From the IMG/VR virus record IMGVR_UViG_3300021057_000274, positions 310,001 to 374,000 of that record: 64,000 bases of DNA; one strand, 5' to 3'. A program made the position numbers and the translations under genes. The notes beneath the pieces were generated by a model. It searched no databases and was not told the origin of the DNA. It saw only the letters and a list, made by a program, of their open reading frames with translations. Positions 17,680 to 64,000 of the stretch are shown piece by piece (position 1 is the stretch's first letter; every line of letters starts with the position of its first letter).

Positions 17680-18498
17680 TGCCGATCTATCGTCGCTTCG
17701 ACAAGAATCGCCCAGAGATTGTAGACCCAAAGGACCTTCCCCTCTCTCGGGAGGAAGCCTTGGCTTGCGCCACGATCACAGACCAGTGGCCTGGTGGGCT
17801 GGGAGAGGTTCTCGTGCCCGATGCCAAGCAGAAGCGCGGCTTCAAGCGCGACCCGTCCTTCAGCGTCTTCAAGAAAGATTACTCGTGCCCGTCGGACGCA
17901 CTCAAGTGCCCGGTCATGGTCATCAAGGAGATGCGCGGGTGGCCGCACGGCGAGTACGCGAAGCACCTCTCGGCGTGGAGAAGTCTTCGCGACGCTTACG
18001 CGAAGGTTCTCGGGCTCGATCTCAAGGCCGCTCACGAGCTCTACAACGAGCACCTTCGCTCGACGCCGAGAGAGATGTCGAAGGTGCTCCGACAATATGC
18101 TGAGCTCGTATGAAGGTCGATCTCATCAGCGTTATGTTCGCGGTTCGGTACATCGAGCAGCGTCGCCGAGAGTTCAACACACAGATGAGAAGCTTGCGCG
18201 CGATGGGCGTGCGCAAGAAGGTACCTATCCTGGGCAGCAATTATCATCACTTCTGTGAGCGGCTGATCGAGCGAGTCGACCGGAGTGATCGCCAACGGGT
18301 GCTTGACGCGTTTTTCAACTTCATCTCGACGCAGCGCGAGCTACCGATCGGCGAGAAGGTCGTCCGCTCAGCGAGCTTGGGTTACACGCTCGCGTACGAG
18401 GTGTCACCAGGAAAACCGACGCCCATCGATGACGAAGGGACAACGTTTCTCATCAGTCTTAAAACCGTGATGAAGAACGACAAAATTCTCTAGAAGTG

Positions 18499-18527
18499 TG
18501 TACTTTTTGAGAGCTTTTTGATACAAT
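18499..18527 (+). promoter_or_regulatory. Sigma70-like promoter
   Basis: TGTACT-N17-TACAAT followed by TATCGTCAAT. Confidence 0.75.
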
Positions 18528-18556
18528 TCTCATATCGTCAATCGTTGAGGCATTAA

Positions 18557-50370: not shown

Positions 50371-53034
50371 ATGTTGCTTCGCGAGACCAACGACTCACAG
50401 TTTGACAGCAATCTCGACGGATCGGCTAGCACCACGACGGTAGCCACCGTCGACGTCAGCTCAAAGATCTTCTCGATCCTCTCGGACGGCATCTACAAGG
50501 ACAAGATCCTCGCCGTTGTCCGTGAGGTCTGCTGCAACGCCTACGACGCCCACGTCGCGGCTGGCAAGAAGTCCGTTCCGATCCACATCAAGATGCCGAC
50601 GTGGAACGACCCGTCGTTCGCGGTCGACGACGAGGGTACCGGGATCGATCCGTCCCAGATCACCAGCATCTACCTCTCGTACGGCAAGTCGACGAAGACG
50701 AGCTCCAACGACCAGATCGGCGCGCTCGGCCTCGGTTGCAAGTCACCTCTCGCTTACACCAAGAACTCGTTCATCATCAAGAATCGCTGGAACGGGACAG
50801 AATACACCTACTTCATTTACCTCAACGAACGCGGCATCCCGGCGATGTCGAAGACGAGCGAGATGCCCGTCTCCGAGGCGAACCGCCTCCGTGACGAGAA
50901 GGGGCAGCGTGCGGTCAAGGACTTCGGCCTGACGGTCGAGTTCGCGGTGCGCAAGGATGACACCCACGTCTTCCGCAGTCGGGTTCAGCGCTTCTTCCGC
51001 TACTGGGGCGGAGCGCTCCCAGAGGTTTCGGGCGTCAACGACGACCTCTTCTCCTCGACCAAGGTCAAGAAGGTTCTCAACGGGAGCGACTGGTTTCTCG
51101 AGGCTAAAGAGGACGACGACCGCGACTTCCGCGGCGCCGTCGCGATCCAGGGCAACGTGCCCTACCCGATCGAGTTCGACTCCCTGCCGAAGCTCCCGAA
51201 GGAGCTGCAGGTCATCGTTCGCAATCCGTTCGTCATCGTCTACGACATGGGCTCCCTCGCGTTTCAAGCCTCCCGCGAAGCCCTCTCGTACGATGACATC
51301 ACGGTCAAGAACCTGGTCGAGCGCTTCGAGGACGTCAAGGCGGACCTCGTCAAGACGTTCAACGCGACGGTCTTCAAGAAGGGGCGTTCGCACCTCCAGT
51401 TCATCCACGACCTGGTCGAGAAGTTCCGCACCTTCCAGAAGAGCGTGTCGCACATCACGACGAATTCGACCGACGTTGACGACCAGTACTGCCAGTTCCT
51501 CTTCGGGCAGCCCCTCGAGACGGCGACGGTCAAGTACGACGGCGCGACCTTCTCGATCAAGGATCTCCTGCAGGGTAAGATCGTTACCCGGCACACGACC
51601 GGGCACCAGAACTTCACGCTGATGTGTCTCGAGCCGAAGGGCCGCAGCGGTCGCCGCACTGTGCTGACGCACAAGACGACGGTCAACTACGTGCTAAACA
51701 AGGAGATGCGCGAAGAGGAGCTCTTTCCGGAGACTGACCATCGCGTCATCCCGACGAAGGACAAGAAGATCGCTAAGGGACAGTGCTTCTCGATGCCGTG
51801 GCGCACCGACCGTGTCAACAAGAAGGACGACTCCGACTTCGCGAACGTCATCCGACACGCAAAGAACTTCAGCATCACGACCGTCAATCGCATCCCGGTG
51901 CAAGGGCGCTTCGGCGTCGCGAAGGTCAAGATCGTCCTGAACGACTGTGTCAGCACCGGCGACGCTCGAATGAAGGCCCTTCTCACCCACATCGAGTACG
52001 CGAGCAAGGCCGTGTCGCCGCACTTCATCTACGTCACCTTCGACCCAAAGGTGACTGACGTCGCCGAGGTCAAGAAGCAGATCGAGGTGCTGATCCAGAC
52101 TGGCTTGAAGGGCGCCGAGATCGAGCTGCTCTCGTCATACCCCGACCATCGCGCGATCGTCGATCGCGAGGCGAAGGAGCGTGGGAAGTTCAAGCTATCG
52201 ACCCGCGAGATCGCTATCTCGAGAGAGTCAACGACGATCTCCCTCGGCTACAACCAGTCGGCCGATCTCAACGACGTCACCTTTACTGACAAGCAAGAGG
52301 TCTTTTCCCTCGACGCCATGCAGGCGATGCCGATGGTCGTCTATTGCTACAAGGGGCGCGGTGCTGGCCAGTTCTTCGATCGGAGCGTTAACCCGGACGA
52401 TCGTACTCTCTCACTGGCGAACAACAGCGACGCTCTCAGCCTCGCCCATCATCTCGGCGTGCTGACCAGGGTCTTTGACGAGGCGAAGAGCTGCAAGGTC
52501 TTTACTCTCGCTGAGAGCCAGAAGAACTGGTTGGGGGCTCGGGGCGTCAACCTCGTTCCGTTCGAGGACCTGATGATCAAGTACACCGCTGAGATGAGCA
52601 AAGCGGCTGGGGACTACCGGAATCGAATCGCGAAGACGATCTGTATCCGAAACATCGGCCAGATCAACAGCTTCTATAGCAACTACGAGCGACTGTGCGC
52701 CAAGAACAAAACGCGCTTCGAGGGCTGGGCGAACCCGAGCCCTTTCATCGACACGGTTCTCACGATCATGAACCAGTCGAACGACAAGCGCGACTTCATG
52801 GTCGAGGCCCTCAACCAACGCCTCAACGGAAGCTCGATCCAGATCAGCGCCAGAGAGACGGCTGCGATCACGAAGGTGATCGAGAGCCGATACCCGCTGC
52901 TTCATCGCGTTTACCTGTCGACGCACGACAAGTCGATCTTCGAGGCGATCCTCGATTACATTGATCTGGTAGATCAGCGCGCGGCGAGCGCTCCAGCGGC
53001 GCAAGTTGGCTCAGACGACACGGCGAGCGCTTAG
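50371..53034 (+). CDS. rIIA: rIIA-like protein
   Basis: FSILSDGIYKDKILAVVRE..CNA.DAH, D.GTGI, STK..SN..IG.LGLG.KSP (GHKL domain); adjacent to an rIIB-like gene. Confidence 0.9.
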   Translation: MLLRETNDSQFDSNLDGSASTTTVATVDVSSKIFSILSDGIYKDKILAVVREVCCNAYDAHVAAGKKSVPIHIKMPTWNDPSFAVDDEGTGIDPSQITSIYLSYGKSTKTSSNDQIGALGLGCKSPLAYTKNSFIIKNRWNGTEYTYFIYLNERGIPAMSKTSEMPVSEANRLRDEKGQRAVKDFGLTVEFAVRKDDTHVFRSRVQRFFRYWGGALPEVSGVNDDLFSSTKVKKVLNGSDWFLEAKEDDDRDFRGAVAIQGNVPYPIEFDSLPKLPKELQVIVRNPFVIVYDMGSLAFQASREALSYDDITVKNLVERFEDVKADLVKTFNATVFKKGRSHLQFIHDLVEKFRTFQKSVSHITTNSTDVDDQYCQFLFGQPLETATVKYDGATFSIKDLLQGKIVTRHTTGHQNFTLMCLEPKGRSGRRTVLTHKTTVNYVLNKEMREEELFPETDHRVIPTKDKKIAKGQCFSMPWRTDRVNKKDDSDFANVIRHAKNFSITTVNRIPVQGRFGVAKVKIVLNDCVSTGDARMKALLTHIEYASKAVSPHFIYVTFDPKVTDVAEVKKQIEVLIQTGLKGAEIELLSSYPDHRAIVDREAKERGKFKLSTREIAISRESTTISLGYNQSADLNDVTFTDKQEVFSLDAMQAMPMVVYCYKGRGAGQFFDRSVNPDDRTLSLANNSDALSLAHHLGVLTRVFDEAKSCKVFTLAESQKNWLGARGVNLVPFEDLMIKYTAEMSKAAGDYRNRIAKTICIRNIGQINSFYSNYERLCAKNKTRFEGWANPSPFIDTVLTIMNQSNDKRDFMVEALNQRLNGSSIQISARETAAITKVIESRYPLLHRVYLSTHDKSIFEAILDYIDLVDQRAASAPAAQVGSDDTASA

Positions 53035-53093
53035 AGTTGTTTACTTTGAGGCGTTCCTAAGTTATAATCGCACCATCAAATGGAGGCTACCAC

Positions 53094-54245
53094 TTGACCG
53101 ACTTTCACTTCGTGACCCACACCACCGGTGTGGCGATGGTCCGCAACGGACGGCACGCTGTCGTGATGAACGACCAGCCGAACTTTTCGTACGTCATGGA
53201 CGTTCTCCGTAGTCTGAAGGGACTACGCGGCGAGGCCCTCGAAGCCAAGCTCAAGGACCTGGACAAGGTCATGACGGTCGGCGGATTGGTCGAGAGCTTC
53301 GGCCAGCCGAAGGACCACAAGCTCAAGGACTGCCGGGTCTTCGTGGAGAAGGGCAAGCTCTTTTACTCGGAGTACCGCGGCCACAAGCAGGAGCTGCACG
53401 GCGCCCTCGCGGAGAGGATCCTCCAAGACCTCGGGAAGCCGTCCAAGGCGTTCGCGCGGTACGGCGACGCCCTGATGCGGTTCATGCAGAACATCCGCAA
53501 GAACAAGGTCAAGGACATCCGCAACGAGCTGTACGAGTGGCTGATGTCCGGCAAGGCGCCGATCACGTATGACGGTTGCTTCCTGGCGTACAAGAAGGTG
53601 CGGAGCAACTTCATGGACGGCCACACCGGGACGATCGACAACTCGCCCGGCAACGTCGTCAGGATGCAGCAGTCGGAGGTCGACACGAACCGAGAGAACC
53701 ACTGCTCGGTCGGCTTGCACTTTTGCTCGAAGGGGTACCTGGATCACTTCGGCGCCGGCGGCGCCAGCAAGATCGTGATCGTCAAGGTGAACCCGCGGCA
53801 CGTGTTCGCGATCCCGACGGACTACAAGTTCCAGAAGGGTCGGGCCAGCGAGTACTTCGTGGTCGGGGAGTACACCGGCGCGCGAAACACCGATGACGGC
53901 CCGGTCGCGGAGGCATTTAAGGACGCCTTCATCGACGAGGACACGAAGCAAGACGCGATGCCGGACGTCAAGCTGGTCGGGTGGCTCCGGCCAAGCTTGG
54001 AGAACCTGGCCAAGAGCTACGGGCTCCTGACCGATGACGGCAAGGTGCTGATCCTCGAACGTCGCGGTAGGATGGTGCCGGTGAAGCAGGCGGCAAACGG
54101 CAAGTTCGAGGACATCGTCGGAATGCATCAAGCAACCGACGACGGCTTGGATGCGCCAAAGTCGATGTCGCTCCAGACCAAGTCGGTCCGGCAAGCGGTG
54201 CGAGCCGCGATCAACAAGGTGGAGAAGGGGCTCACCACGCGTTAG
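53094..54245 (+). CDS. rIIB: rIIB-like protein
   Basis: PIT.DGCFLAYK.V...D.HTG..DNSPG..V.M...CS.GLH...VKVNP..V..IP.DY...K.R. Confidence 0.9.
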   Translation: MTDFHFVTHTTGVAMVRNGRHAVVMNDQPNFSYVMDVLRSLKGLRGEALEAKLKDLDKVMTVGGLVESFGQPKDHKLKDCRVFVEKGKLFYSEYRGHKQELHGALAERILQDLGKPSKAFARYGDALMRFMQNIRKNKVKDIRNELYEWLMSGKAPITYDGCFLAYKKVRSNFMDGHTGTIDNSPGNVVRMQQSEVDTNRENHCSVGLHFCSKGYLDHFGAGGASKIVIVKVNPRHVFAIPTDYKFQKGRASEYFVVGEYTGARNTDDGPVAEAFKDAFIDEDTKQDAMPDVKLVGWLRPSLENLAKSYGLLTDDGKVLILERRGRMVPVKQAANGKFEDIVGMHQATDDGLDAPKSMSLQTKSVRQAVRAAINKVEKGLTTR

Positions 54246-54300
54246 GTTGAAATCGCCTCCCAACCTGACGTGATCCGGGAAGAAGGTTCCCGGGTCGGTG

Positions 54301-54334
54301 AGGGCGATCGGGCGACCGGTCGCCCTTACTTTTT
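54301..54334 (+). terminator. Intrinsic terminator
   Basis: AGGGCGATCGG-GCGA-CCGGTCGCCCT-TACTTTTT. Confidence 0.75.
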
Positions 54335-54368
54335 GCAATAAATAAGAGAGGCATAAGGAAGAAGACAC

Positions 54369-55010
54369 ATGAGCACGCACATCCTGGCAGTTGACAAGTA
54401 CTACCAGCCGCACCGGTGGATCGGCGTCGAGGAAGCTATGGTCCTCGAGGCGAAAGAGCTCGTCCTGGAGCGCAAGGGCGAAGCGATCTACGTCTACCGC
54501 GGCGGCATCAACGGTAAGACAGGCGAGCAGTCTCGCCTGGAGACCAGCTCGATCATCGTCGTCGACGGAGCTCCGTCAGCGCGCAAGCGCAAGGACCCGG
54601 CGCTGACGAACGCGTCGCTGTTCCAGCGCGACCGCCACATGTGCGCGTACTGCGGTGGCCTCTTCCGCGCGGGTGACCTGACCCGCGACCACATCGTGCC
54701 GACGTCGAAGGGCGGCCGGGACGTGTGGATGAACGTGGTCACGGCATGCCGCGGCTGCAACATGCTCAAGGGAGACTTGATGCCGGGCCAGAAGCTGCAC
54801 GGTTTCAAGGAGGGCAACGTCGGCCCGCAGGGTACCGGCCGCATGGACCCGCTCTACGTCCCGTACGTGCCGTGCCGCGCCGAGCACATGATCTTGAAGA
54901 ATCGCTCGATCAAGGCCGACCAGATGCAGTTCTTGCTGGGCCTGGTCTTGAACGAGAAGTCTAGGATCTTCAAGTACGCGGAGGAGCTGATGAAGGGCAT
55001 GCGTGCGTAA
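54369..55010 (+). CDS. HNH endonuclease
   Basis: RD..CAYCG...TRDHIVP.SKGG...W.NVVTAC..CN..K. Confidence 0.9.
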   Translation: MSTHILAVDKYYQPHRWIGVEEAMVLEAKELVLERKGEAIYVYRGGINGKTGEQSRLETSSIIVVDGAPSARKRKDPALTNASLFQRDRHMCAYCGGLFRAGDLTRDHIVPTSKGGRDVWMNVVTACRGCNMLKGDLMPGQKLHGFKEGNVGPQGTGRMDPLYVPYVPCRAEHMILKNRSIKADQMQFLLGLVLNEKSRIFKYAEELMKGMRA

Positions 55011-55329
55011 GATCCCCGCTAGTCGGGCTTGGAGGCCGTGGGCGCGAGCTCACGGCCTCGCTTCATTGGTAAGCCACTTCGTGACCTCCCTGACGTATAC
55101 GTCAGGGAGCCGGAGTTGCGACCAGCAAAAGCGAAGTTCAAGAGGTTCAAGCTTGACACGAGGTACGCTCATCACCGCAGTGAGGGACTGACTCACCGCA
55201 GAAACAAGGGCACCAAACTCCAAATTGGTGTACAATCGCGTGAATCTGTGTTAAGATTCTCTAACTTCAACGAATCTTGAGCGAAAGGAGCAGAGAATGA
55301 AGCATTAGATACCTTAACGAGGAGATCTA

Positions 55330-55623
55330 ATGTCTCGCACTCTGCACCACGGCCTCAAGGCCAAGATCCGCCGCTTCGGGTTCGGCTACCGTCCGACCGG
55401 CTGGTATGACATCGGCGGCGAAGAGTTCCCCGCCCCGCCCAAGCGCCCTCGCCGCGGCCCTCGCGCCGTCAGCATCAAGGGCGGCGGCAACTTCCACTAC
55501 CGTCTCCACCTCCCCGAGGCGACCGCTCGCGCCCTCTCTCGCGAGTTCTGCACTAAAATTCTCAAGGCCGTCGACCTCGACGACCTCCCGCTCTTCCCCG
55601 AGCTCCGCAAGCCGATGGACTGA
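55330..55623 (+). CDS. Small basic protein
   Basis: SD GAGGAG; MSRTLHH... Confidence 0.6.
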   Translation: MSRTLHHGLKAKIRRFGFGYRPTGWYDIGGEEFPAPPKRPRRGPRAVSIKGGGNFHYRLHLPEATARALSREFCTKILKAVDLDDLPLFPELRKPMD

Positions 55624-55640
55624 CTACAAGGGAGGCAAGG

Positions 55641-55850
55641 ATGGCCTTTGACAACTACTACCCGAAGCGCAAGGACTTCAAGCGCGTTTTCAATCGTGCT
55701 CGCCGCGCCGATCGCATCAAGGCGACCGTTCGCGGTTGTCGCAACGGCGGGAGCTGCGATCACTGCCGTCGTAACCGGATGATCGGAGCTCTGCGGCTCA
55801 AGGCCCTCCTGCTTACCCACGATGAGGTGCACGATCTCAAGATCAAGTAG
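55641..55850 (+). CDS. Small basic Cys-containing protein
   Basis: CRNGGSCDHCRRNR. Confidence 0.6.
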   Translation: MAFDNYYPKRKDFKRVFNRARRADRIKATVRGCRNGGSCDHCRRNRMIGALRLKALLLTHDEVHDLKIK

Positions 55851-55888
55851 AGGTAGGTAACCTTGGACCTCATGGAGCTAAATACTCC

Positions 55889-56941
55889 ATGCTTCTCAGT
55901 GAACTCTTAGACTCCGAGGCCGAGTGGAAATGGCTCAAGCAGAACAACGACGTCTGGAAAGCCGCATTTAAGGTTGATGGACGAGAGTTCGAGCTAGCGA
56001 TCCACGCTTGGCCAGACATCTTTTCAGATCCTAAAAACGAGAATAACCGGTGGGACTTTGAGTTTGTTGACCGAACAGATGACGTCGGAAAAGCCTTCGG
56101 TAACACAGGAAAGATGGATCGTAGCGCGATCACCGTCTTCGCGACGGTGATGAAGATCGTGCGAGAGTTCATCGAGGAGAAGCGTCCAAACCGGATCTCG
56201 TTCACGGGGAATAAGGCAAAGAAGCGCGACAAGCTCTATCTCACTCTGATCAGAGCGATCGGTAATGACATCAAAAAGCTCGGATACAAGATCGAGCATC
56301 GCCCAGATGATCTTGAGAAGAACGGCTTTATGGCCGCTGACGTTTTCACTCTTGTTCGCGAAGGTCATCTTGATGAGGGAGTCAAGGAGCTCATCACGGC
56401 GTTGATCATCGGAGCAGCAGCGATCGGTGGAGTCGACAACGTTGAGGCCGCCAAGAAGAAGCCAGTCGCGGCGAAGACCAAGATCGTCAAGCTGATCCCT
56501 GACCAGAAGCGGCTTCAGAAGCTCTCCGCGGCCGCCGCTCAAAAGTACCAGAAGGCTGATCCTAAGATGATCGTCAAGATCGTCAAGCTCGCCAAGAAGC
56601 ATGAGGATCCGGTCTTCCCGAGAGCCGAGGACATCCTCGCGACGATCGGGGTCGAGAGCAGCTTCAACCCGAAGGCCAAGTCAAACCTTCCAAAAGACCC
56701 CGCGATCGGTCTCATGCAGGTGCGTCCAGAGATCTGGGGGATCTCACCGTCTGAGCTGAGTGACGTTGAGAGCCAGATCAAGCACGGAGTCGTCATTCTC
56801 AAGAAAAAGTACAATCGCTTCAAGGGTGATAAGATCAAGACCATCCACGCTTACAATGTGGGGATCACCGGCGTGCTTCAGGGGCGTCGAAACGAGAACT
56901 ACGTTCAAAAGTGGAATCGAGAGCGGGAGCTTTACACGTGA
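55889..56941 (+). CDS. Putative virion protein with a C-terminal lytic transglycosylase (SLT)
   Basis: VESSFNPKA, AIGLMQ, AYNVG; leader MLLSELLDSE; TAAATA at 55879-55884. Confidence 0.85.
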   Translation: MLLSELLDSEAEWKWLKQNNDVWKAAFKVDGREFELAIHAWPDIFSDPKNENNRWDFEFVDRTDDVGKAFGNTGKMDRSAITVFATVMKIVREFIEEKRPNRISFTGNKAKKRDKLYLTLIRAIGNDIKKLGYKIEHRPDDLEKNGFMAADVFTLVREGHLDEGVKELITALIIGAAAIGGVDNVEAAKKKPVAAKTKIVKLIPDQKRLQKLSAAAAQKYQKADPKMIVKIVKLAKKHEDPVFPRAEDILATIGVESSFNPKAKSNLPKDPAIGLMQVRPEIWGISPSELSDVESQIKHGVVILKKKYNRFKGDKIKTIHAYNVGITGVLQGRRNENYVQKWNRERELYT

Positions 56942-57417
56942 AGTTGACGGAGTTTTGCCAGGAGATCGGTGAAGAGGTAGTTGAGGTCGTCGAGGCGGTT
57001 GAGGACATCGTCGGTGACATCTGTGAGGAGCAGCTCGACGAGAAGAGCATCATGCAGGTGATCGCCGCGCTGCTGATCGGCACGGCGTCATTCACGATCA
57101 GGGCGGAGGAACAAGAGAAGGCCGAGGCCGTCATCCAGCAGCTTAACCTCTCGAAGGCTGACCTCGAGTGGATCCGTGAGATGAACAAGAAGGCCAACGA
57201 GAAGATCCTCCCGACCAATGACTCGGCCGAGGAGCTTGCTCGTAAGATAAAGGAGCTCTACAAGATCGGCGGGTTCTCCTTCAAGAGCCGAGGGCTTAGC
57301 ATGCCCCTGGTGAAGGACAAGGACGAGGAGGTCAGCGTGCGCATCGGCAAGAATCCCGTGCAAGGACTTCCTAACGCTGGCAAGGGCATCGGCATCAACT
57401 ACAAGAAGACGTTTTAG
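56938..57417 (+). CDS. Putative virion protein with an acidic propeptide
   Basis: MKLTEF..., acidic run ending LDE, then a hydrophobic segment. Confidence 0.55.
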   Translation: MKLTEFCQEIGEEVVEVVEAVEDIVGDICEEQLDEKSIMQVIAALLIGTASFTIRAEEQEKAEAVIQQLNLSKADLEWIREMNKKANEKILPTNDSAEELARKIKELYKIGGFSFKSRGLSMPLVKDKDEEVSVRIGKNPVQGLPNAGKGIGINYKKTF

Positions 57418-57891
57418 ATGCATCTGCATGAGCTACTCGACTCTAAGGTGCCCTGGCGCTGGACCCACAAGGGGCACGTCTTGCGCGGTGCCGAGTTTGA
57501 GATCGGCGGCAAAAAGTTCATCGTAGATCTAGTTCGTGTCGTGGGGCTTAACACCGATCGCTGGAAGGTCTCCTTTGCACAGATCATCAAGATGATGACT
57601 GGCAAAGATGAGCCGTTCTACTTAAACATGCACAACATGAAGAGAGAAGCGATACAAGTTTTCGCGACGGTCATCAAGGTCATCGAGGACTTCATTCATG
57701 AGGTGAAACCAGATGAGATTAGCTTCGTCGGTTATAAGCATGACAAGAGGGACAAGCTCTACTCCCTCTTTCTAGAGAAGTTCAAGCCCAAGCTCCAGCA
57801 AGCTGGATACAAGGTCTCCTCCAACGCTCCAGAGAACTGGGATGACGAAGTCACTTTTTCTATAGTGAAGGACAAGGATCCAGCTAAATAG
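57418..57891 (+). CDS. Paralog of the N-terminal domain of the 55889 protein
   Basis: AIQVFATVIKVIEDFI...ISFVG.K..KRDKLY versus AITVFATVMKIVREFI...ISFTG.K..KRDKLY. Confidence 0.7.
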   Translation: MHLHELLDSKVPWRWTHKGHVLRGAEFEIGGKKFIVDLVRVVGLNTDRWKVSFAQIIKMMTGKDEPFYLNMHNMKREAIQVFATVIKVIEDFIHEVKPDEISFVGYKHDKRDKLYSLFLEKFKPKLQQAGYKVSSNAPENWDDEVTFSIVKDKDPAK

Positions 57892-57895
57892 GTTC

Positions 57896-58486
57896 ATGCC
57901 GGACCTACTTACCGCTGACATCCTCTTGAAGGTGATGCCGAACGTCAAGACGCGGATCGACTCCAAGAACCCGAAGTCGAAGACGCGCCTCGAGGTTTTT
58001 CTTGAGCCGCTCAACATCACGCTTGAGGCCTTCGAGATCAACACTCCGCGGCGCGCCGCGATGTTCCTCGCCCAGGTCGCCCACGAGTCGGGAGAGTTTC
58101 GCTACCTGGCCGAGCTCGCCGACGGCGTCGCGTACGACACCGGAAAGCTGGCTGAGAACCTAGGCAACACTCCTGGAGCGGACGGTGACGGTCAAAAGTA
58201 TCGTGGGCGCGGCTTGATCCAGATCACCGGCGCGGCGAACTACAAGGAGTGCTCGATCGCGCTCTTCAGAGATCCTGACTTTCTCCTCACGAACCCCGAG
58301 GTGCTCGAGAAGCCCCTCCACGCGTGCCGCTCGGCGGGTTGGTTCTGGAAGTGGAAGAAGCTCAACGCTTGCGCTGACGCCGATGACTTTCTCAAGTGCA
58401 CGAAGATCATCAACGGCGGGACGAACGGTCTTGACGATCGTAAGATGTACTGGGAGCGCGCCAAGCGGGAGCTGAAGGTCACTTAA
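57896..58486 (+). CDS. GH19 chitinase-like endolysin
   Basis: FLAQVAHESG, YRGRGLIQITG..NY, WFW, INGGTNGL..R; TAAATA at 57885-57890. Confidence 0.9.
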   Translation: MPDLLTADILLKVMPNVKTRIDSKNPKSKTRLEVFLEPLNITLEAFEINTPRRAAMFLAQVAHESGEFRYLAELADGVAYDTGKLAENLGNTPGADGDGQKYRGRGLIQITGAANYKECSIALFRDPDFLLTNPEVLEKPLHACRSAGWFWKWKKLNACADADDFLKCTKIINGGTNGLDDRKMYWERAKRELKVT

Positions 58487-59478
58487 TGGACTTCAAAGCC
58501 TTCGTCATCCAAGAAGCAAGGGATCCGCTCGTCATCACCGACTTCGGCGTAGCCACCGACGTGGAGCACCAGGGCAAAGTGATCACCACGATCCCCCGTT
58601 ACGGCGTGTGGACCGTGGCCAGCAACGAGCTTCAGCGAGTGATCGACACCGGTGACGACCTCGAGGCTCTCAAGGTGAAGCACGGGATCACGTCTGATCC
58701 TATCAAGCTAGGAAAGAGGTGACCATGGACTTACTTCGAGAGCTGATCAATCTCCGCGAGGTAGAGGAGAAGAAGCCAGATAAGCCCGCCGAGAAGCTTA
58801 GAGCTCGCCCTGACGCGGTCAACTTCAAGGAGCTCGAGGGTGAGACGATCACGAATGTCAAGTATGGTTCGCCCCACTATCCTCGTGCTGGAAGTTATGG
58901 CGCCGTCACGATCACCACGAAGTCGGGGAAGGAGTTCGTGCTCACCCAGGGCTTCGGTGAGGTTAACCTTTCGAAACTCATTCCGCTATGATCTTCAAGA
59001 GCTTTCTAGCAGAGACGTTCGGCGAGACCGTCCTGAAGCAGATCCCGCAGCAAAAGCAGCGGCAAGACGCGCTGAACGACCAGCTCAAGGATCTCTACGG
59101 CGTCGCGAATCGTCTCGGGATGTATGACGCGGCCGACTACTTGAGGACGATCTTGGTCAAGGCCGGGGAGATGGCGCGATGAAGCTCTTGCAAGAGTTGC
59201 TCGAGATTCTCTCAGAGGCGATCGTCGAGCCAGAGCTCACCCGTAAGGCTGAGCTTCACCACGGCACGCAAGACTACTTCATCGGCGTAGACGCGTTCAA
59301 GAACGCCCTCGAGAAGAGCGACCTGCCCGAGGATGTCAAGGCTGACGTGATCGACGAGATCTACAAGCATGACTTGCGTCAGCTGAACTACACGATCATC
59401 TATCAGCTCTGTCAAGACGCCGGGCATGAGGAGCATCTCGGCAAGATCATCAAGTTAGCAGGCTTTCGCAAGCACTAA
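58486..59478 (+). other. Four small putative head-internal protein genes (starts 58486, 58725, 58988, 59179)
   Basis: Leaders MDFKAFVIQE-A, MDLLRELINLRE, MIFKSFLAE and MKLLQELLEILSE-A. Confidence 0.6.
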
Positions 59479-60248
59479 CTCAAAAGCAGTGTACTTCTGA
59501 GAGAGTTTGAGTTAAAATTCTCTTATCCCATCCAGCAAGGTCATCTCCCAAGCATGTTCTTTGTTGAGGCCCGGTACCCGTACGAGAGCAACGCCGTTTT
59601 GGGCGGTCGCTCTACCCTCGAGGCCGCCGTCGCTCTGGCGGAGAAGTGTGCCCGTGACCAGCGCTTCATGCACTATGACCAGATCGCGGTCATCGAGATT
59701 CCGTCCGAGGACTTCGACACCGGCTACTTGACCGGAGCCTGGGGCATGGACGAGTACGTCGGCCCGCGGACGGTGCACTGCATCGACGTCGAGCAGTACC
59801 TGCGCCTCGTTGACCACGAGGCCTTCGAGGCCGAGGAGGCGTCGGGCCGTGAGTACGACGCGCTCGCAGTGTTCGGCTGCTTCGGCGGGAAGGCCGACTA
59901 CCGGAAGACCACCGGAAAGAGGGCAAGCTGAGAGAGCAGACAGGTTGGTTAGTCTGTGACAAGCATGTTTGCTTGTATGACGAGCGCACGAAGCTACATC
60001 GCTGCGTGAAGCACGGGGCGATCTTGGGATACCGTCACTGGTTGACGGGACTGACCCGTCAAGAAGCTCGCAAGAGATTGAACGAGGATCGAGATGCTCA
60101 AGGGCGTTGAACGTACCCGAGGTTGTTGGTTCGGCTCTGGTAACTCTGGGCGCCGTGGGCGTCGGCAGCTAGAGCGTAAGCTCCGCCGTGCAGGTAAGCG
60201 GCATCTCCGTCGATCGGATCTGGCTCGTGAGCTGAGCGTTAGTCTAGC

Positions 60249-60599
60249 ATGAACCTCAAGCCCTGCCCCTTCTGCGAGTCAGTCGCCGAATTTGTTCCGG
60301 CCGATAGCGTCGACGGAGCTATGATCGGTTGCTCAAATCGGAAGTGTCCCGCGTTTCTGCTTCTCCTCGTTGAGCCCGGTGACACGGTCGAGCGCAACGT
60401 TGAGCTCTGGAACAATCGGACAGAGAAGAAGCTGAAGGCCGCTGAGAAGATCTGTCGTGACGCCGCTGAGCGACTAGGGAAGGCGGCCTCGGAAGAATGG
60501 GCGAGCCATGACGTTGAGGCGGCTAACATCAGGCAAGCTCAGAGCAGTCTCGCGTCACAGCTCGCTGATGGAATTCGAGCCCTCATTCGCGATGGCTAA
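60249..60599 (+). CDS. Lar-like zinc-ribbon protein
   Basis: LKPCPFC...C....C...WNNR. Confidence 0.55.
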   Translation: MNLKPCPFCESVAEFVPADSVDGAMIGCSNRKCPAFLLLLVEPGDTVERNVELWNNRTEKKLKAAEKICRDAAERLGKAASEEWASHDVEAANIRQAQSSLASQLADGIRALIRDG

Positions 60600-60845
60600 G
60601 TGTCCCACCTGCGGAGCACCTGTCGCTAGGCCGGGCGGCGGCCCAGATGCCCAGTTCATATTCAAGAAGAAGCCGGTGCGCCGGCGCGCCGCGGCGCCGA
60701 AATTCGAAACTCTAGAACGCACTCGTGAACGCTTCGAGCAGTGGTTCAAGATGGACCTGTTCGGAGGCGAGCGCGACATGACGTTGAAGCATCAGCTTTG
60801 GACGGCGTGGCAGGTGGCTCACCTTGGTAGGTCTGGCTAGGCTTC

Positions 60846-61391
60846 ATGACTTGGCGTAAGCCGCTGAAGCTTAGGCTCGTTGAGACGAGCGACGGCGAGT
60901 CTTTCAAGATCTTCTCAAAGGACACGACTGGCGTTCCGGTCGGGAGTCATCCAGGAGCGTTCGGAGTCGTCCGAAAGCACCACGTCCACGAGGGCGTCGA
61001 CCTCTACGCGCCAGTGGGCACGCCTGTTTACGCGGTAGAGTCAGGTGCGGTCGTCAGAGTGCTGCCGATGACCGGTCCAGCCGCAGGGTCACCGTGGTGG
61101 TTCGACACGAAGGCGGTGATGGTCGAGGGGCGGTCTGGAGTCGTCGTCTACGGAGAGATCTCTCCTGCGGTACAAGAAGGGCGAGTGATCTTCGCAGGTG
61201 ACGTCGTCGGACACGTCATCCGTGTCCTTCGCCATGACAAGGGGCGCCCGACCAGCATGCTTCACCTCGAGCTCCATCGCATGGGCTCGCGCAGCTGTCT
61301 GGACTGGAATCTGCCCCCGGCGAAGCCGCCCGAGCAGCTGCTCGATCCTACGCCGCACCTGTTGCAGATCTGCCGCAGGCATCGTAAATAG
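60846..61391 (+). CDS. M23 metallopeptidase
   Basis: HEGVDL.AP.GTPVYAV..G.V and HLE motifs. Confidence 0.85.
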   Translation: MTWRKPLKLRLVETSDGESFKIFSKDTTGVPVGSHPGAFGVVRKHHVHEGVDLYAPVGTPVYAVESGAVVRVLPMTGPAAGSPWWFDTKAVMVEGRSGVVVYGEISPAVQEGRVIFAGDVVGHVIRVLRHDKGRPTSMLHLELHRMGSRSCLDWNLPPAKPPEQLLDPTPHLLQICRRHRK

Positions 61392-61412
61392 CTCTTTATC
61401 GGAGATCACCAC

Positions 61413-61748
61413 GTGGAATTCAAGAACTTTCTGAGAGAGGCTAAGATCGACCACGACGAGCTGATCAAGAAGGGCGTCGAGGCCTTTAGAGCCGTCGCGA
61501 AGTACCTCACAAAAAAGTTCCCCAAATCAGAAGACGGATGGACCGACGAGGCCTTCTTCGACCCGAAGACCGAGTGCTGGTACACTTACGAGTACGTCAG
61601 CATGAAGTCTGGAGATGAGGTTTTCCTCTACCTCAAGACCGACCCTAGCGGAAAGGTTGAAGAGGTTAACGAGTTCACAGACGCTCAAGTTAAGTCTTGG
61701 GTGACCGATGATGATCTGATCGCAGAGATCACCGAGCAACTGCCGTGA
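61413..61748 (+). CDS. Putative head-internal protein (MEFKNFLRE-A)
   Basis: TAAATA at 61385-61390; leader motif. Confidence 0.6.
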   Translation: MEFKNFLREAKIDHDELIKKGVEAFRAVAKYLTKKFPKSEDGWTDEAFFDPKTECWYTYEYVSMKSGDEVFLYLKTDPSGKVEEVNEFTDAQVKSWVTDDDLIAEITEQLP

Positions 61749-62170
61749 ACTTCAAGAACTTTCTCGCGGAGGCTGCGGCCGACGCTTACTACCACGCGAC
61801 CCTCACCAAGAACGCTGACCAGATCAAGGAGAAGGGTCTCACCAAGTTCAACGCCTCGAACTGGGTCAAGGCCGCGAGCAAGGAGCGCTACGGCGACGGC
61901 GCGATCTTCGCCTTCGAGAACGAGCTCGACGCGCTTCGCTGGGCAGGCAAGATGGACTGGGAGTTCAACAAGGGTTTCGGCACCGGAAAGGTCTCGATCG
62001 TCAAGCTTCGCGTTTCAGATCCTGAGGCTTGGAAGGTGGATGACGCTGACCCGCTAGGTCAAGCAGGATCCAAGGGGCGCTGGATGAAGAGCCAGGACGC
62101 GGTCAAGGCGACCGACATCATCTCGATCACTCCCGTCAACGCAGCCGATATCAAGCGCGCGACCAAATGA
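61745..62170 (+). CDS. Putative head-internal protein, possible ADP-ribosyltransferase fold
   Basis: MNFKNFLAE-A leader then YYHAT..N...I...GL. Confidence 0.5.
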   Translation: MNFKNFLAEAAADAYYHATLTKNADQIKEKGLTKFNASNWVKAASKERYGDGAIFAFENELDALRWAGKMDWEFNKGFGTGKVSIVKLRVSDPEAWKVDDADPLGQAGSKGRWMKSQDAVKATDIISITPVNAADIKRATK

Positions 62171-62526
62171 GAATTGATGAGATCGTAGGCGAGCTCCCGG
62201 TCGGTGCTCGAGTAAAGGGTACCATCCTCGAGACGTCCGAGGAGGGCGACAAGGAGTACTTTGGCACGGTGATCGATCCCAAGCTAGCCGATAGCGGCGA
62301 AGTTGACGTGGAGGGCGATCATGGAGAGGTAGGTCTCTTCATCAAGCCAGATCATGATGACATCGTCATGGCTTTCACGCGAGAAGGTGATCACTGGAGG
62401 CATGACGCCTACGGCGGTTACTACGAGGTGACGAAGTTCCAGGTCGTCAAGACCGAGCAGTCGAAGAGGGGTCGTTGCCCGCACGGGGTGGCTGCTGGTA
62501 ACCGCTGCGAGAAGTGCGACGGATAG
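62167..62526 (+). CDS. Hypothetical protein (MRIDEIVGE)
   Basis: ATGA overlap; C-terminal CPH...CEKC. Confidence 0.55.
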   Translation: MRIDEIVGELPVGARVKGTILETSEEGDKEYFGTVIDPKLADSGEVDVEGDHGEVGLFIKPDHDDIVMAFTREGDHWRHDAYGGYYEVTKFQVVKTEQSKRGRCPHGVAAGNRCEKCDG

Positions 62527-62565
62527 GCTCAGGCTGGTGGTAGTCCATCCGGATACACAAAGTTG

Positions 62566-62594
62566 TTTACTTCCGTCGAGAACTAATATATAGT
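62566..62594 (+). promoter_or_regulatory. Sigma70-like promoter of the tRNA operon
   Basis: TTTACT-N17-TATAGT. Confidence 0.75.
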
Positions 62595-62602
62595 ATCATA
62601 CC

Positions 62603-62668
62603 ATGACGAACGTCCTATCACTTAGCTTGAGCTGGTCCCTGTCCTCGTATCTCGGGGAGAGGCCCTAG
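62603..62668 (+). CDS. Putative attenuator leader peptide MTNVLSLSLSWSLSSYLGERP
   Basis: ATG 8 nt after the -10 box; 12 of 13 consecutive codons are Leu/Ser/Tyr; the stop lies within the antiterminator strand. Confidence 0.8.
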   Translation: MTNVLSLSLSWSLSSYLGERP

Positions 62669-62707
62669 TCTCTATGTGATCTGACGAAAAGTCGACAGAT
62701 TCTAGAC

Positions 62708-62740
62708 CTAGGGCCTCCAAGTGAGGCCCTAGTCGTTTTT
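62708..62740 (+). terminator. Attenuator terminator hairpin
   Basis: CTAGGGCCTC-CAAGT-GAGGCCCTAG-TCGTTTTT; the 5' arm also complements 62659-62668. Confidence 0.8.
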
Positions 62741-62747
62741 GCAACGC

Positions 62748-62759
62748 GCTCTTTTACAA
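62748..62759 (+). promoter_or_regulatory. boxA-like antitermination element
   Basis: GCTCTTTTACAA, one mismatch from rrn boxA GCTCTTTAACAA, just before the first tRNA. Confidence 0.6.
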
Positions 62760-62776
62760 TTCGGAAGCAGTACCTT

Positions 62777-62863
62777 GCCAGACTGGCGGAATCGGCAGAC
62801 GCGCTAGTCTCAAAAATTAGTACCCGTGAGGGTGTCCCGGTTCGAGCCCGGGGTCTGGCACCA
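62777..62863 (+). tRNA. tRNA-Leu(CAA)
   Basis: Cloverleaf, CTAGT-CTCAAAA-ATTAG, long variable arm, GTTCGA, encoded CCA. Confidence 0.93.
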
Positions 62864-62864
62864 A

Positions 62865-62952
62865 GGATGGTTGGCAGAGTGGCCAATTGCACCTGGCTGT
62901 AAACCAGGCGCCCTGACGGGCTTCGGTGGTTCAAATCCATCACCATCCACCA
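62865..62952 (+). tRNA. tRNA-Tyr(GTA)
   Basis: CCTGG-CTGTAAA-CCAGG, variable arm, GTTCAAATC, CCA. Confidence 0.93.
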
Positions 62953-62957
62953 ACATT

Positions 62958-63049
62958 GGGTCTGGTCATAAGGACGGGTGGTCCTGTCAGGAGCCTGTAA
63001 AGCTCTTCCTCAGCGAGGCACGGAGTTCGATTCTACCCCAGACCCACCA
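62958..63049 (+). tRNA. Atypical tRNA(GTA), Tyr-like, 8-bp acceptor
   Basis: GGGTCTGG/CCAGACCC-ACCA; AGGAGC-CTGTAAA-GCTCTT; 4-bp T-stem with a bulged A. Confidence 0.65.
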
Positions 63050-63053
63050 AATT

Positions 63054-63143
63054 GGAGAGTGAACCGCACGGGGTGTGGCACTGCCTGGAAAGCAGTCGGG
63101 CTGGCGTAAGCTGGTCGCGGGTCGGGACCGCCGCTCTCCTCCA
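63054..63143 (+). tRNA. tRNA-Ser(GGA), 8/4 fold
   Basis: GGAGAGTG/CGCTCTCC, ACTGC-CTGGAAA-GCAGT, GCGG-GTCGGGA-CCGC, TCCA end. Confidence 0.85.
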
Positions 63144-63161
63144 AGTTGTAGAAGTAACGCT

Positions 63162-63250
63162 GCCCTCGTGGACAAATTGGTAAAGTTGCCAGGCTCAGAA
63201 CCTGGAGCCGCGAAAGCGTATTGTCGGTTCGACTCCGACCGAGGGCACCA
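63162..63250 (+). tRNA. tRNA-Leu(CAG)
   Basis: CCAGG-CTCAGAA-CCTGG, variable arm, CCA. Confidence 0.93.
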
Positions 63251-63258
63251 ACACGAGA

Positions 63259-63341
63259 CCCCTCGTGGCAAATGGAAATTGGTACACCTACTAGATCGAG
63301 AGTCTAGGCTTTTCTCGGTTCGAATCCGAGCGAGGGGACCA
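63259..63341 (+). tRNA. tRNA-Leu(GAG), atypical
   Basis: CTAGA-TCGAGAG-TCTAG; C33, enlarged D region, only a 6-nt variable loop. Confidence 0.75.
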
Positions 63342-63345
63342 GCAT

Positions 63346-63438
63346 GGAAGACGAACCGAGAAGGTCTCGGACTCGCCTTGAAAGCGATGGGATCGCGGCC
63401 AACCCGTGATTGGGGATCATCTCCTCCGTCTTCCGCCA
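63346..63438 (+). tRNA. tRNA-Ser(TGA), 8/4 fold
   Basis: GGAAGACG/CGTCTTCC-GCCA, 6-bp D-stem, TCGC-CTTGAAA-GCGA, GGGG-ATCATCT-CCTC. Confidence 0.85.
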
Positions 63439-63442
63439 GTAT

Positions 63443-63526
63443 GCGAGCGTGGTGGAATGGTATACACACGTGCCTTAGGAGCACGTGCCGCAAGGTATGT
63501 GGGTTCGACTCCCACCGCTCGCACCA
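63443..63526 (+). tRNA. tRNA-Leu(TAG)
   Basis: CGTGC-CTTAGGA-GCACG, variable arm, CCA. Confidence 0.93.
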
Positions 63527-63537
63527 AAGGAGACGAC

Positions 63538-63735
63538 ATGAACCTCAAGTCTAGAGAAGCAGGTGAGCTGATCCAGGGCATCCAGGTAAACGAGTCTCGC
63601 AGGGTGAAGTACTCGTCCTGGTACCACGCGATCGCTCGAAACAGAGGAATCACGATCAGGACGAGGAGGGTGAGCGATGACGAGATCATCGTCACCCGGA
63701 TCGAACCCAAGGATGACGAACTAGTCAGGGACTAG
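63538..63735 (+). CDS. Small hypothetical protein within the tRNA array
   Basis: SD AAAGGAG; MNLKSREAG...; its 3' end overlaps tRNA-Ser(CGA). Confidence 0.55.
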   Translation: MNLKSREAGELIQGIQVNESRRVKYSSWYHAIARNRGITIRTRRVSDDEIIVTRIEPKDDELVRD

Positions 63736-63798
63736 CGCTGCCTCGAAAGCAGATGGACTCGGAAACGGGCTGGGGGTCGGGACCTCCGTCATCCGCCA
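63711..63798 (+). tRNA. tRNA-Ser(CGA), 8/4 fold
   Basis: GGATGACG/CGTCATCC-GCCA, CTAGTC/GACTAG D-stem, CTGC-CTCGAAA-GCAG, GGGG-GTCGGGA-CCTC. Confidence 0.85.
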
Positions 63799-64000
63799 AG
63801 GAAGCAAGCAGGCGCTGGCAACGGCGTTTGGAGACTCATGACCTTTTTGACGTAGCTTTTGCATGCTGCATCAGACGAGCGACCTCTACTTAGGAGCCTT
63901 TATCATGAACGACACCGAGCTGCTGAACGCGATCAACAAGTACAGGTTGCATCCGCTCCCCTCAAGCTTTCTGGGTGGGGAGTACTGGAGGTGTCTTTGG

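Follow-up and report, generated by a model that had tools for sequence, protein, structure and literature searches.

How the transfer RNA genes of large phages are switched on and off is the question raised by a locus in a ~390-kb jumbo-phage contig, in which a very short reading frame rich in Leu, Ser, Tyr and Trp codons precedes a block of Leu, Ser, Tyr and Trp tRNA genes. tRNA genes are usually thought to be regulated only at transcription initiation, through growth rate and stringent control. The original prediction, made from the sequence alone, held that this locus is a leader-peptide attenuator in which a ribosome stalled at a Leu, Ser or Tyr codon would free an antiterminator and allow the matching tRNAs to be transcribed. 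The window analyzed here is a stretch of 64,000 nt (positions 310,001 to 374,000 of IMG/VR record IMGVR_UViG_3300021057_000274). As described below, the interpretation is supported by comparative sequence evidence, and the phage probably makes these tRNAs only when ribosomes run short of them, although no experiment supports this yet.

Organization of the leader and the tRNA array

As shown in Table 1, all elements of the original prediction were found at their positions. The promoter-like site matches 9 of 12 consensus positions, and because one such site per 4 kb is expected by chance it is not significant alone; however, its -10 box is conserved in related phages. No Shine-Dalgarno sequence precedes the ORF, so the mRNA is inferred to be leaderless and translation of the ORF depends on leaderless initiation. 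The run of 13 consecutive Leu/Ser/Trp/Tyr codons is the longest in all six frames of the window, the next longest being 8, and about 7e-4 runs of this length are expected in the whole window (p=0.236 over 127,996 codons). It uses five distinct Leu codons (CTA, CTT, TTG, CTG and CTC) and four distinct Ser codons (TCA, AGC, TCC and TCG), plus TGG and TAT, and the chance of five distinct Leu codons under the codon usage of the phage itself is 0.015. The 10-mer GAGGCCCTAG occurs exactly three times in the 64 kb, at 62659 (+), 62723 (+) and 62708 (-), all of them in this leader. The codon run and the tripled 10-mer argue against the possibility that an ordinary terminator closes the upstream operon and that the ORF and the alternative pairing arose by chance. 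In its favor, the promoter match alone is at chance level and terminator-like sites are not enriched in the region, but this reading is contradicted by the comparative data below, in which the ORF, the pairing and the position are all conserved in nine phages, and it is considered very unlikely.

Table 1. Positions of the leader elements and tRNA genes in the 64,000-nt window.
Position	Strand	Feature	Description
62566..62594	+	Sigma-70-type promoter	-35 TTTACT, 17-nt spacer, -10 TATAGT
62603..62668	+	Leader ORF	21 codons, MTNVLSLSLSWSLSSYLGERP; ATG 8 nt after the -10 box
62615..62653	+	Regulatory codons	Codons 5-17, 13 of 13 Leu/Ser/Trp/Tyr
62629..62647	+	Segment 1	Inside the regulatory codons; pairs with segment 2 in the full-length minimum-free-energy fold
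62653..62672	+	Segment 2	Core GAGGCCCTAG at 62659-62668, including the stop codon; 5' arm of the antiterminator
62679..62700	+	Spacer hairpin	ATCTG...CAGAT, within the antiterminator loop
62704..62717	+	Segment 3	CTAGGGCCTC plus flank; shared between antiterminator (2:3) and terminator (3:4)
62723..62741	+	Segment 4 plus T-run	GAGGCCCTAG; 3' arm and U-tract of the intrinsic terminator (stem 62708-62732)
62748..62762	+	rrn-type boxA plus AATT spacer	GCTCTTTTACA; predicted NusB/NusE loading site
62777..64000	+	tRNA array	Part within the window
62777-62863		Leu-CAA	
62865-62952		Tyr-GTA	
62957-63047		Sec-like unit	GTA anticodon
63054-63143		Ser-GGA	8/4 type
63162-63250		Leu-CAG	
63259-63345		tRNA-like unit	
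63346-63438		Ser-TGA	8/4 type
63443-63526		Leu-TAG	
63711-63798		Ser-CGA	8/4 type

Within the window, default ARAGORN and Rfam call only Leu-CAA, Tyr-GTA, Leu-CAG and Leu-TAG. The three Ser tRNAs are real but of the non-canonical 8/4 type, and relaxed ARAGORN calls them, together with a fourth, as Ser-GGA, Ser-TGA, Ser-CGA and Ser-GCT. The original prediction had placed a Leu-GAG at 63258-63345, but this unit has a 5-nt loop and is not a canonical tRNA; a genuine Leu-GAG lies beyond the window at 8217-8303 of L001, the locus whose coordinates extend past the window. The array continues about 1.3 kb beyond the window with Ser-GCT, Leu-GAG, two Trp-CCA and a probable Leu-TAA. It was predicted from the AGC and TGG codons of the leader that tRNA-Ser(GCT), and possibly tRNA-Trp, would lie just beyond position 64000, and this was confirmed. 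In contrast, the claim that every tRNA of the array has a cognate codon in the leader requires correction, since the probable Leu-TAA and about five odd tRNA-like units, several of unknown identity, have no counterpart there.

Conservation in related phages

DNA searches of the region against 50,697 cultured-phage records found only generic tRNA similarity, the upstream 119-aa protein has no homologue other than itself, and other copies of the contig are identical and thus offer no variation. Pattern scans for the conserved boxA block in both IMG/VR and the JGI metagenomes found only chance hits plus the source contig. Relatives were therefore reached through rIIB, and eight further phages (rIIB 38-54% identical, GC 38-59%) were found to carry the same layout upstream of syntenic arrays; two other loci, L097 and L099, did not reach an array. 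All nine genomes come from metagenomes, the hosts are unknown, and no cultured relative was found: the closest cultured phage by rIIB is Ralstonia RsoM2USA, at 41% identity over a partial match, and no tRNA genes are annotated near its rIIB. More distant phages with general tRNA arrays (L028, L030, L031, L056 and L022) have no comparable leader or boxA.

In all nine leaders, a -10 box (TATAAAT, TATAGT or TACAAT) lies 7-10 nt before the ATG with no Shine-Dalgarno sequence, followed by a 21-31-codon ORF with a 12-15-residue L/S/Y/W run, a segment in the 3' part of the ORF that pairs with the terminator's 5' arm, a terminator that is usually followed by an rrn-type boxA, and an array made up almost entirely of Leu/Ser/Tyr/Trp tRNAs. 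A scan of 1.5 Mb of related loci found such ORFs only at these sites. Close relatives differ by an in-frame 3-nt indel and by synonymous changes; peptide order is poorly conserved and only composition and codon classes are kept. The terminator is present in all nine leaders, although the U-tracts are interrupted in several relatives, for example GTTTCTGG.

The codons of the leaders were compared with the tRNAs that follow them. All nine leaders contain codons for all four Ser isoacceptor classes, with a joint probability of 1.8e-4 if the leaders are treated as independent, and they cover 3-5 Leu classes despite opposite codon biases. However, the leaders are not phylogenetically independent, codon choice is also constrained by the 1:2 pairing, the codon-diversity statistics are modest for each leader (P 0.05-0.65), and tRNA-Leu(TAA) has no TTA codon in five of nine leaders. 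Leader content tracks tRNA content in the one informative case, since the related locus L021, the only one whose leader lacks a Trp codon, also has the only array without tRNA-Trp. It is possible that the attenuator is real but reports general translation capacity, such as ribosome availability, host shut-off or translation inhibitors, so that any slowing of the leader ribosome would open the operon. Every leader-peptide attenuator also responds to global ribosome speed, the per-leader codon statistics are weak, and a cellular tRNA array induced by impairment of translation is known in Anabaena (PMC8421152). This alternative is nevertheless regarded as unlikely, because it does not explain why 12-15 consecutive codons are restricted to exactly the four amino acids whose tRNAs follow in nine phages, nor why the leader without Trp precedes the array without tRNA-Trp.

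Folding and covariation of the leader

The region 62601-62745 folds at -58.1 kcal/mol, with z = -4.5 against shuffles. At equilibrium, the terminator wins even when segment 1 is blocked, and the switch must therefore be kinetic, as it is in trp. When truncated transcripts were folded, the 2:3 antiterminator was the minimum-free-energy structure before segment 4 is made, and it was lost when a ribosome footprint covered the stop region. In all nine leaders the minimum-free-energy fold is 2:3 before segment 4 exists, and in the full-length transcript it carries the 3:4 terminator in all nine, together with a predicted 1:2 pairing in most, the outer pairs of which are weak. The structure thus appears to follow the four-segment trp-type design with 1:2, 2:3 and 3:4 pairings rather than a two-state switch.

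In each of the nine leaders, the segment inside the 3' part of the ORF is complementary to the terminator's 5' arm, with a duplex energy of -16 to -24 kcal/mol and p <= 0.017 against 300 dinucleotide shuffles each. In the core of the 2:3 helix, 71 of 72 cells are canonical pairs and five of eight positions show compensatory double changes, while controls with the partner slid out of register pair in only 24-50% of cells. Since MAFFT misaligned the related loci L020 and L021, covariation was counted in a hand-set register; RNAalifold finds the same helix independently. In L019 and L020, segment 2 lies 20-34 nt before the stop codon, where a ribosome at the stop would not cover it, so that these cases need 1:2 to re-form.

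The boxA element and the path of transcription

An rrn-type boxA, which was not part of the original prediction, was recognized between the terminator and the first tRNA. The GCTCTTT(A/T)ACAATT block matches the E. coli rrn boxA-spacer ugcucuuuaacaauuua (PMC2724277) and the consensus GYTCTTTAANA (PMC5725501); the window has GCTCTTTTACA-ATT, with one mismatch, while L006 and L021 have GCTCTTTAACA-ATT, an exact match. It occurs once in the window and once in each related locus that has it, and is conserved in eight of nine relatives; L020 has no clear boxA and has an extra small ORF before its first tRNA. A boxA must be transcribed to work, so transcription would have to come through the terminator. 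In addition, no other + strand promoter-like site lies between the leader promoter and position 8870 of L001, and the leader terminator is the only terminator-like site on the + strand between the promoter and the end of the array.

It might also be considered that the small ORF is an independent gene for a functional Leu/Ser-rich peptide with its own promoter and terminator, the tRNA array being transcribed from a separate start overlapping the TACAAT in the conserved block. The peptide is conserved in nine phages, the block contains TACAAT or AACAAT, which resembles a -10 box, and in L007 a TTTTCA lies 16 nt upstream of it. However, no -35 element lies at a consistent distance from the block in the nine sequences, the promoter scan finds nothing there, the block matches rrn boxA plus spacer over 14 nt, peptide order is poorly conserved, and segment 2 covaries with the terminator's 5' arm, which a free-standing gene would not need. 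This explanation is therefore improbable.

Proposed mechanism

Taken together, the locus is probably a trp-type, ribosome-mediated transcription attenuator that controls a phage operon of Leu, Ser, Tyr and Trp tRNA genes, a conclusion held with good confidence but resting on comparative sequence evidence only. In the proposed mechanism, host RNA polymerase starts at a sigma-70 promoter, with the transcript inferred to begin at or within a few bases of the AUG, and a 70S ribosome translates the leader ORF, whose regulatory codons are spread over the synonymous codons read by the different isoacceptors the operon encodes. If decoding is fast, the ribosome runs through or sits on segment 2, or segments 1 and 2 re-pair behind it; segments 3 and 4 then form the terminator, and transcription would stop about 35 nt before the first tRNA. 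If any of these aminoacyl-tRNAs is scarce, the ribosome would stall on segment 1, segment 2 would pair with segment 3, and the terminator could not form. The polymerase would then read on, transcribe boxA, be loaded with Nus factors and transcribe the ~2.6-kb untranslated tRNA array without Rho termination. The new tRNAs would relieve the stall and shut the operon off again, which would be negative feedback of tRNA genes by their own products; no report of such control was found. If so, it would show how jumbo phages dose their tRNA sets and would link rrn-type boxA antitermination to phage tRNA arrays.

A more specific reading is that the leader places about one codon for each Leu and Ser isoacceptor, plus Tyr and Trp, in the stall window, so that loss of any single host tRNA species, for example through a tRNA-cleaving defense nuclease, would switch on the replacement set of the phage as a self-limiting, demand-driven counter-defense circuit. 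The evidence does not exclude this, but it remains tentative: sensing of individual isoacceptors is suggestive, with only modest statistical support, and the link to anticodon nucleases, proposed in the original prediction, is speculation.

Comparison with known systems

Class I ribosome-mediated attenuators of amino-acid operons and pheST (trpL, hisL, leuL, thrL, ilvL, pheL and pheM) likewise have a short leader ORF with a run of regulatory codons, four segments giving mutually exclusive 1:2, 2:3 and 3:4 pairings (of which 1:2 is here only predicted, in most of the nine leaders), and an intrinsic terminator before the first structural gene. In the present case, the regulated genes are tRNA genes rather than enzymes or synthetases, so that the product would feed back directly on the sensor; the run mixes four amino acids and spreads over synonymous codons instead of repeating one codon; the mRNA is inferred to be leaderless; the element is phage-encoded; and a boxA follows the terminator. 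A permissive Rfam scan of 62000-64000 (E <= 1) returned only tRNA-type hits and weak chance hits, with no match to a leader family (Trp_leader, His_leader, Leu_leader, Thr_leader and others). The T-box riboswitch, the other known tRNA-sensing attenuator, also gave no Rfam hit, and the leader, at about 140 nt, most of which is ORF, is too short for it.

In rrn antitermination (boxA with NusB/NusE/NusA/NusG/SuhB) and at lambda nut sites, boxA lies, as here, at the start of a long untranslated RNA operon, but the present element heads a phage tRNA-only operon rather than rRNA and sits downstream of an intrinsic terminator inferred to be regulated, and no boxB hairpin or N-like protein was identified. 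Leaderless polycysteine short ORFs appear to act as Cys-responsive attenuators in mycobacteria (Canestrari et al. 2020), where the codon content of the ORF would similarly sense the supply of one kind of aminoacyl-tRNA, but these appear to control cysteine metabolism genes in a cellular genome. The long tRNA array of Anabaena PCC 7120 (PMC8421152) is a supernumerary tRNA operon that is silent by default and switched on when translation is impaired, as is inferred for the arrays here; no leader peptide, attenuator or terminator is mentioned in that paper, and the array encodes 23 functional tRNAs, whereas the arrays here are almost entirely Leu, Ser, Tyr and Trp, that is, the long-arm tRNAs (Leu, Ser, Tyr) plus Trp. 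Phage tRNA clusters with (8/4) tRNA-Ser were described in a study of tRNA structure by Mukai et al. 2017 (PMC5389517), and the four Ser tRNAs of this array share the 8-bp acceptor and 4-bp T stem, the long variable arm, the Ser anticodons and the discriminator G or U of that type.

Source contig and sequence elements

The window corresponds to positions 310001-374000 of IMGVR_UViG_3300021057_000274, a contig of 389 kb, and the same phage was also assembled at ~395.7 kb in the JGI sample and in an ENA sample. Locus L001, the stretch of this phage that extends 4.5 kb beyond the window, is numbered so that the L001 position equals the window position minus 56166. The other copies are identical across the 11.8 kb of the window that they overlap (52167-64000). 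The gene content, which includes rIIA-like and rIIB genes, HNH, lysozymes, and the PrkA/DUF444/SpoVR trio, marks it as a jumbo phage.

The promoter, leader ORF and terminator of the original prediction were all found where they had been placed, and their coordinates are collected in the table below together with those of the other features. The 10-mer GAGGCCCTAG occurs exactly three times in 64 kb, twice forward and once as its complement, and all three copies are in this element. Codons 5-17 of the leader ORF are all Leu, Ser, Trp or Tyr, and this 13-codon run is the longest in the six-frame translation of the window, with a runner-up of 8; with p(LSYW)=0.236 over 127,996 codons, about 7e-4 such runs are expected per window. 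In addition, the five Leu codons are all different, although CTC makes up 51% of Leu codons in this phage (P=0.015).

Coordinates of the leader, the tRNA array and neighbouring features in the window and in related loci
Sequence	Position	Feature	Remarks
Window	62566-62594	Promoter	Sigma-70-like
Window	62603-62668	Leader ORF	21 codons
Window	62629-62647	Segment 1	Inside the regulatory codons
Window	62653-62672	Segment 2	
Window	62708-62732	Terminator (3:4)	Followed by a T-run
Window	62957-63047	Selenocysteine-like tRNA	GUA (Tyr) anticodon; right after the canonical tRNA-Tyr
Window; L001	63054-63143, 63346-63438, 63711-63798; 8009-8095	Four tRNA-Ser isoacceptors (GGA, TGA, CGA, GCT)	Non-canonical 8/4 type
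Window	63258-63345	Leu-GAG of the original prediction	5-nt loop; not a canonical tRNA
Window; L001	63259-63345; 8304-8412, 8646-8748, 8771-8850, 8976-9068	tRNA-like units	Aberrant anticodon arms
Window	63539-63735	65-aa ORF inside the tRNA array	GGAG ribosome-binding site
Window-equivalent	63863-64178	Further small ORFs	
Window; L001	61413-61748, 61745-62170; 9190-10104	Proteins flanking the array	Shared N-terminal motif
L001	10042-11875, minus strand	488-aa FAD-dependent oxidoreductase and small 4Fe-4S-ferredoxin-like ORF	Directly after the array
L003 (this phage)	18289-18735	PTH2-type peptidyl-tRNA hydrolase	About 8 kb beyond the window
L097 (relative)	17457-18134	Split RF-1/PCRF fragments	
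L007; L098 (relatives)	18316-18410; 18691-18782	Long-arm tRNAs called Ile(TAT)	92-95 nt; UAU anticodon
L020 (relative)	19270-19460	26-codon ORF	Between the terminator and the first tRNA

The tRNA array

Default ARAGORN and Rfam call only Leu-CAA, Tyr-GTA, Leu-CAG and Leu-TAG in the window. The three Ser tRNAs of the original prediction fold as cloverleaves with an 8-bp acceptor stem, 6-bp D stem, long variable arm and 4-bp T stem, and they are called by ARAGORN at a relaxed threshold; this is the (8/4) tRNA-Ser type already described in phage tRNA clusters by Mukai et al. 2017 (PMC5389517). However, the Leu-GAG that had been proposed within the window is not a canonical tRNA. Beyond the window, the array continues with 8/4 Ser-GCT, a canonical Leu-GAG, two Trp-CCA, a probable Leu-TAA and several odd tRNA-like units, so that the explicit prediction of Ser-GCT, and possibly Trp, just past position 64000 is borne out. 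Among identifiable tRNAs, the array encodes only Leu, Ser, Tyr and Trp, which are the same four amino acids as the run in the leader.

The array also contains less usual units. The selenocysteine-like tRNA has an acceptor of about 9 bp, a 6-bp D stem and a 6-bp anticodon stem and scores 27.9 bits with Rfam tRNA-Sec, and extra Sec-like units are also found in relatives. Several tRNA-like units have good acceptor and T arms but aberrant anticodon arms, such as a 5-nt or 9-nt loop, and two of them give weak hits to the tRNA-like domain of tmRNA. The last ~25 nt of the 65-aa ORF overlap the 5' half of tRNA-Ser(CGA).

Predicted folding of the leader

The region 62601-62745 is much more structured than shuffled versions (-58.1 kcal/mol, z=-4.5). 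In the full-length minimum-free-energy fold, segment 1 is paired with segment 2, and the terminator (3:4) is also formed; when the transcript is cut before segment 4, the minimum-free-energy fold instead pairs segment 2 with segment 3 over 10-13 bp. That 2:3 pairing survives a ribosome footprint on codons 5-15 and is lost when the footprint covers the stop region. At equilibrium the terminator wins regardless, and the choice must therefore be kinetic, as in the classical attenuators.

Conservation in related phages

The flanking small genes have no homologues, whereas rIIB does, and about 85 loci were obtained from the contexts of rIIB homologues and from an IMG/VR scan with an rIIB profile. 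Every locus of the closer clade, in which rIIB is 38-54% identical, that reached far enough carries a Leu/Ser/Tyr/Trp tRNA array downstream of rIIB-HNH. A blind scan of 1.5 Mb for L/S/Y/W runs found a small ORF directly upstream of each of these arrays and nowhere comparable. With the window there are nine distinct leaders, namely those of the window and of the related loci L006, L007, L098, L096, L018, L019, L020 and L021. The peptides share composition more than order, for example MNKLLSSSWSSYLSLYLGRG..., MKNFNSYLSSLSYLSSYLWGRG... and MKNTSLSYLSSSSLYSDGG..., and close relatives differ by an in-frame codon indel and by synonymous changes, which points to a translated frame. All nine have a -10 box (TATAAAT, TATAGT or TACAAT) 7-10 nt before the ATG and no Shine-Dalgarno sequence, while the 65-aa ORF inside the array does have GGAG upstream; the leader is therefore most likely a leaderless mRNA.

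Each of the nine has a GC-rich hairpin plus T-run 51-64 nt after the stop codon, and each also has a segment in the 3' part of the ORF that is complementary to the hairpin's 5' arm, with a duplex energy of -16 to -24 kcal/mol and p <= 0.017 against 300 dinucleotide shuffles. In all nine, the truncated transcript is predicted to fold into 2:3, and the full transcript carries the 3:4 terminator in all nine, with 1:2 alongside it in most. When the nine were put in one register by homology, the 2:3 core had 71 canonical pairs out of 72 cells, and compensatory double changes occurred at five of eight core positions; for instance, one position is C-G in five phages against U-A in four, and another shows A-U, G-C and U-A. 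Sliding the partner strand by 1-3 nt drops pairing to 24-50%, and RNAalifold on a plain MAFFT alignment predicts the same helix. A terminator alone does not require segment 2 to track segment 3, and this is therefore evidence of selection for the alternative pairing. The nine-fold conservation excludes chance as an explanation.

The boxA block

A block conserved between the terminator and the first tRNA, which reads CGCTCTTT(A/T)ACAATT, turned out to be an rrn-type boxA. The E. coli rrn boxA-spacer is ugcucuuuaacaauuua and lambda boxA is cgcucuua (PMC2724277), while the gamma-proteobacterial consensus is GYTCTTTAANA (PMC5725501). L006 and L021 match the consensus exactly; the window, L007, L098 and L096 have one mismatch; and L018 and L019 are one mismatch away in other positions. 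L020 has no clear copy, the block being replaced there by a 26-codon ORF, and the layout is therefore not uniform across the clade. The block is unique in the window and in each related locus that has it, so it is not a general phage promoter.

Because boxA acts as nascent RNA, the promoter must lie upstream of it; the only candidate is the leader promoter, and the only + strand terminator-like site between that promoter and the end of the array is the attenuator. This places the terminator squarely in the path of tRNA transcription, and it would also explain, by inference from the sequence, how a 2.6-kb untranslated transcript could escape Rho. It might be supposed that the small ORF is an independent peptide gene and that the tRNAs have a separate promoter, but the 2:3 covariation and the boxA identity argue against this.

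Leader codons and tRNA content

Every one of the nine leaders has at least one codon for each of the four Ser isoacceptor classes (GGA, TGA, CGA, GCT), and each has codons for three to five Leu classes, plus Tyr, although the genomes range from 38 to 59% GC and have opposite codon preferences. The probability that all nine cover all four Ser classes is 1.8e-4 if they are independent and about 5e-4 counting seven lineages, and the Leu classes give a hand-derived Fisher p of about 0.013. These numbers are modest, the leaders are related, and codon choice is also constrained by the 1:2 pairing; sensing at the level of isoacceptors is therefore only suggested. Eight leaders contain TGG, and a CCA-anticodon tRNA or tRNA-like unit is found in every one of their arrays that is long enough. 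Exceptions exist, since Leu-TAA is present in several arrays whose leaders lack TTA and several tRNA-like units are unidentified. By contrast, L021 has no TGG, and its complete array, which is followed by coding genes, has no Trp tRNA, a single but pointed case of the covariation between leader codons and tRNA content that had been predicted.

Proposed mechanism and comparison with known systems

The best explanation is a trp-type attenuator whose output is the set of tRNAs that its own leader codons consume. In this model, scarcity of any Leu, Ser, Tyr or Trp aminoacyl-tRNA stalls the ribosome on segment 1, which frees segment 2, prevents the terminator from forming, and lets polymerase reach boxA and the array. 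All the evidence is computational, and no cultured relative was found. A general translation-stress sensor cannot be excluded, but it does not explain the composition match. The sequence does not distinguish loss of tRNA, for instance through nucleases, from loss of charging as the signal, although the former makes more sense for an operon that makes tRNAs.

Apart from the 1:2 pairing, which is only predicted, the element fits the structural definition of a class I attenuator, but it matches no Rfam leader family or T-box. Full-text searches found no description of a tRNA operon, phage or cellular, under leader-peptide attenuation, and the nearest concept is the translation-stress-inducible tRNA array of Anabaena, for which no attenuator is mentioned. 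The machinery is known, and the new features are the target, the multi-amino-acid and multi-codon leader, the most likely leaderless start, and the coupling to boxA in a clade of jumbo phages.

Genes and tRNAs near the arrays

The proteins flanking the array share an N-terminal motif M-x-F-K/R-N/Q-F-L-x-E-A and look paralogous, with no Pfam hits on record. Translation-related genes lie near the arrays, namely a PTH2-type peptidyl-tRNA hydrolase in this phage and split RF-1/PCRF fragments in a relative. The 488-aa FAD-dependent oxidoreductase, which is succinate dehydrogenase / fumarate reductase flavoprotein-like, and the small 4Fe-4S-ferredoxin-like ORF lie on the opposite strand to the array and are unusual cargo for a phage. 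Meanwhile, the long-arm tRNAs called Ile(TAT) are found a few kb after the array in relatives and resemble the allo-tRNA-UAU group.
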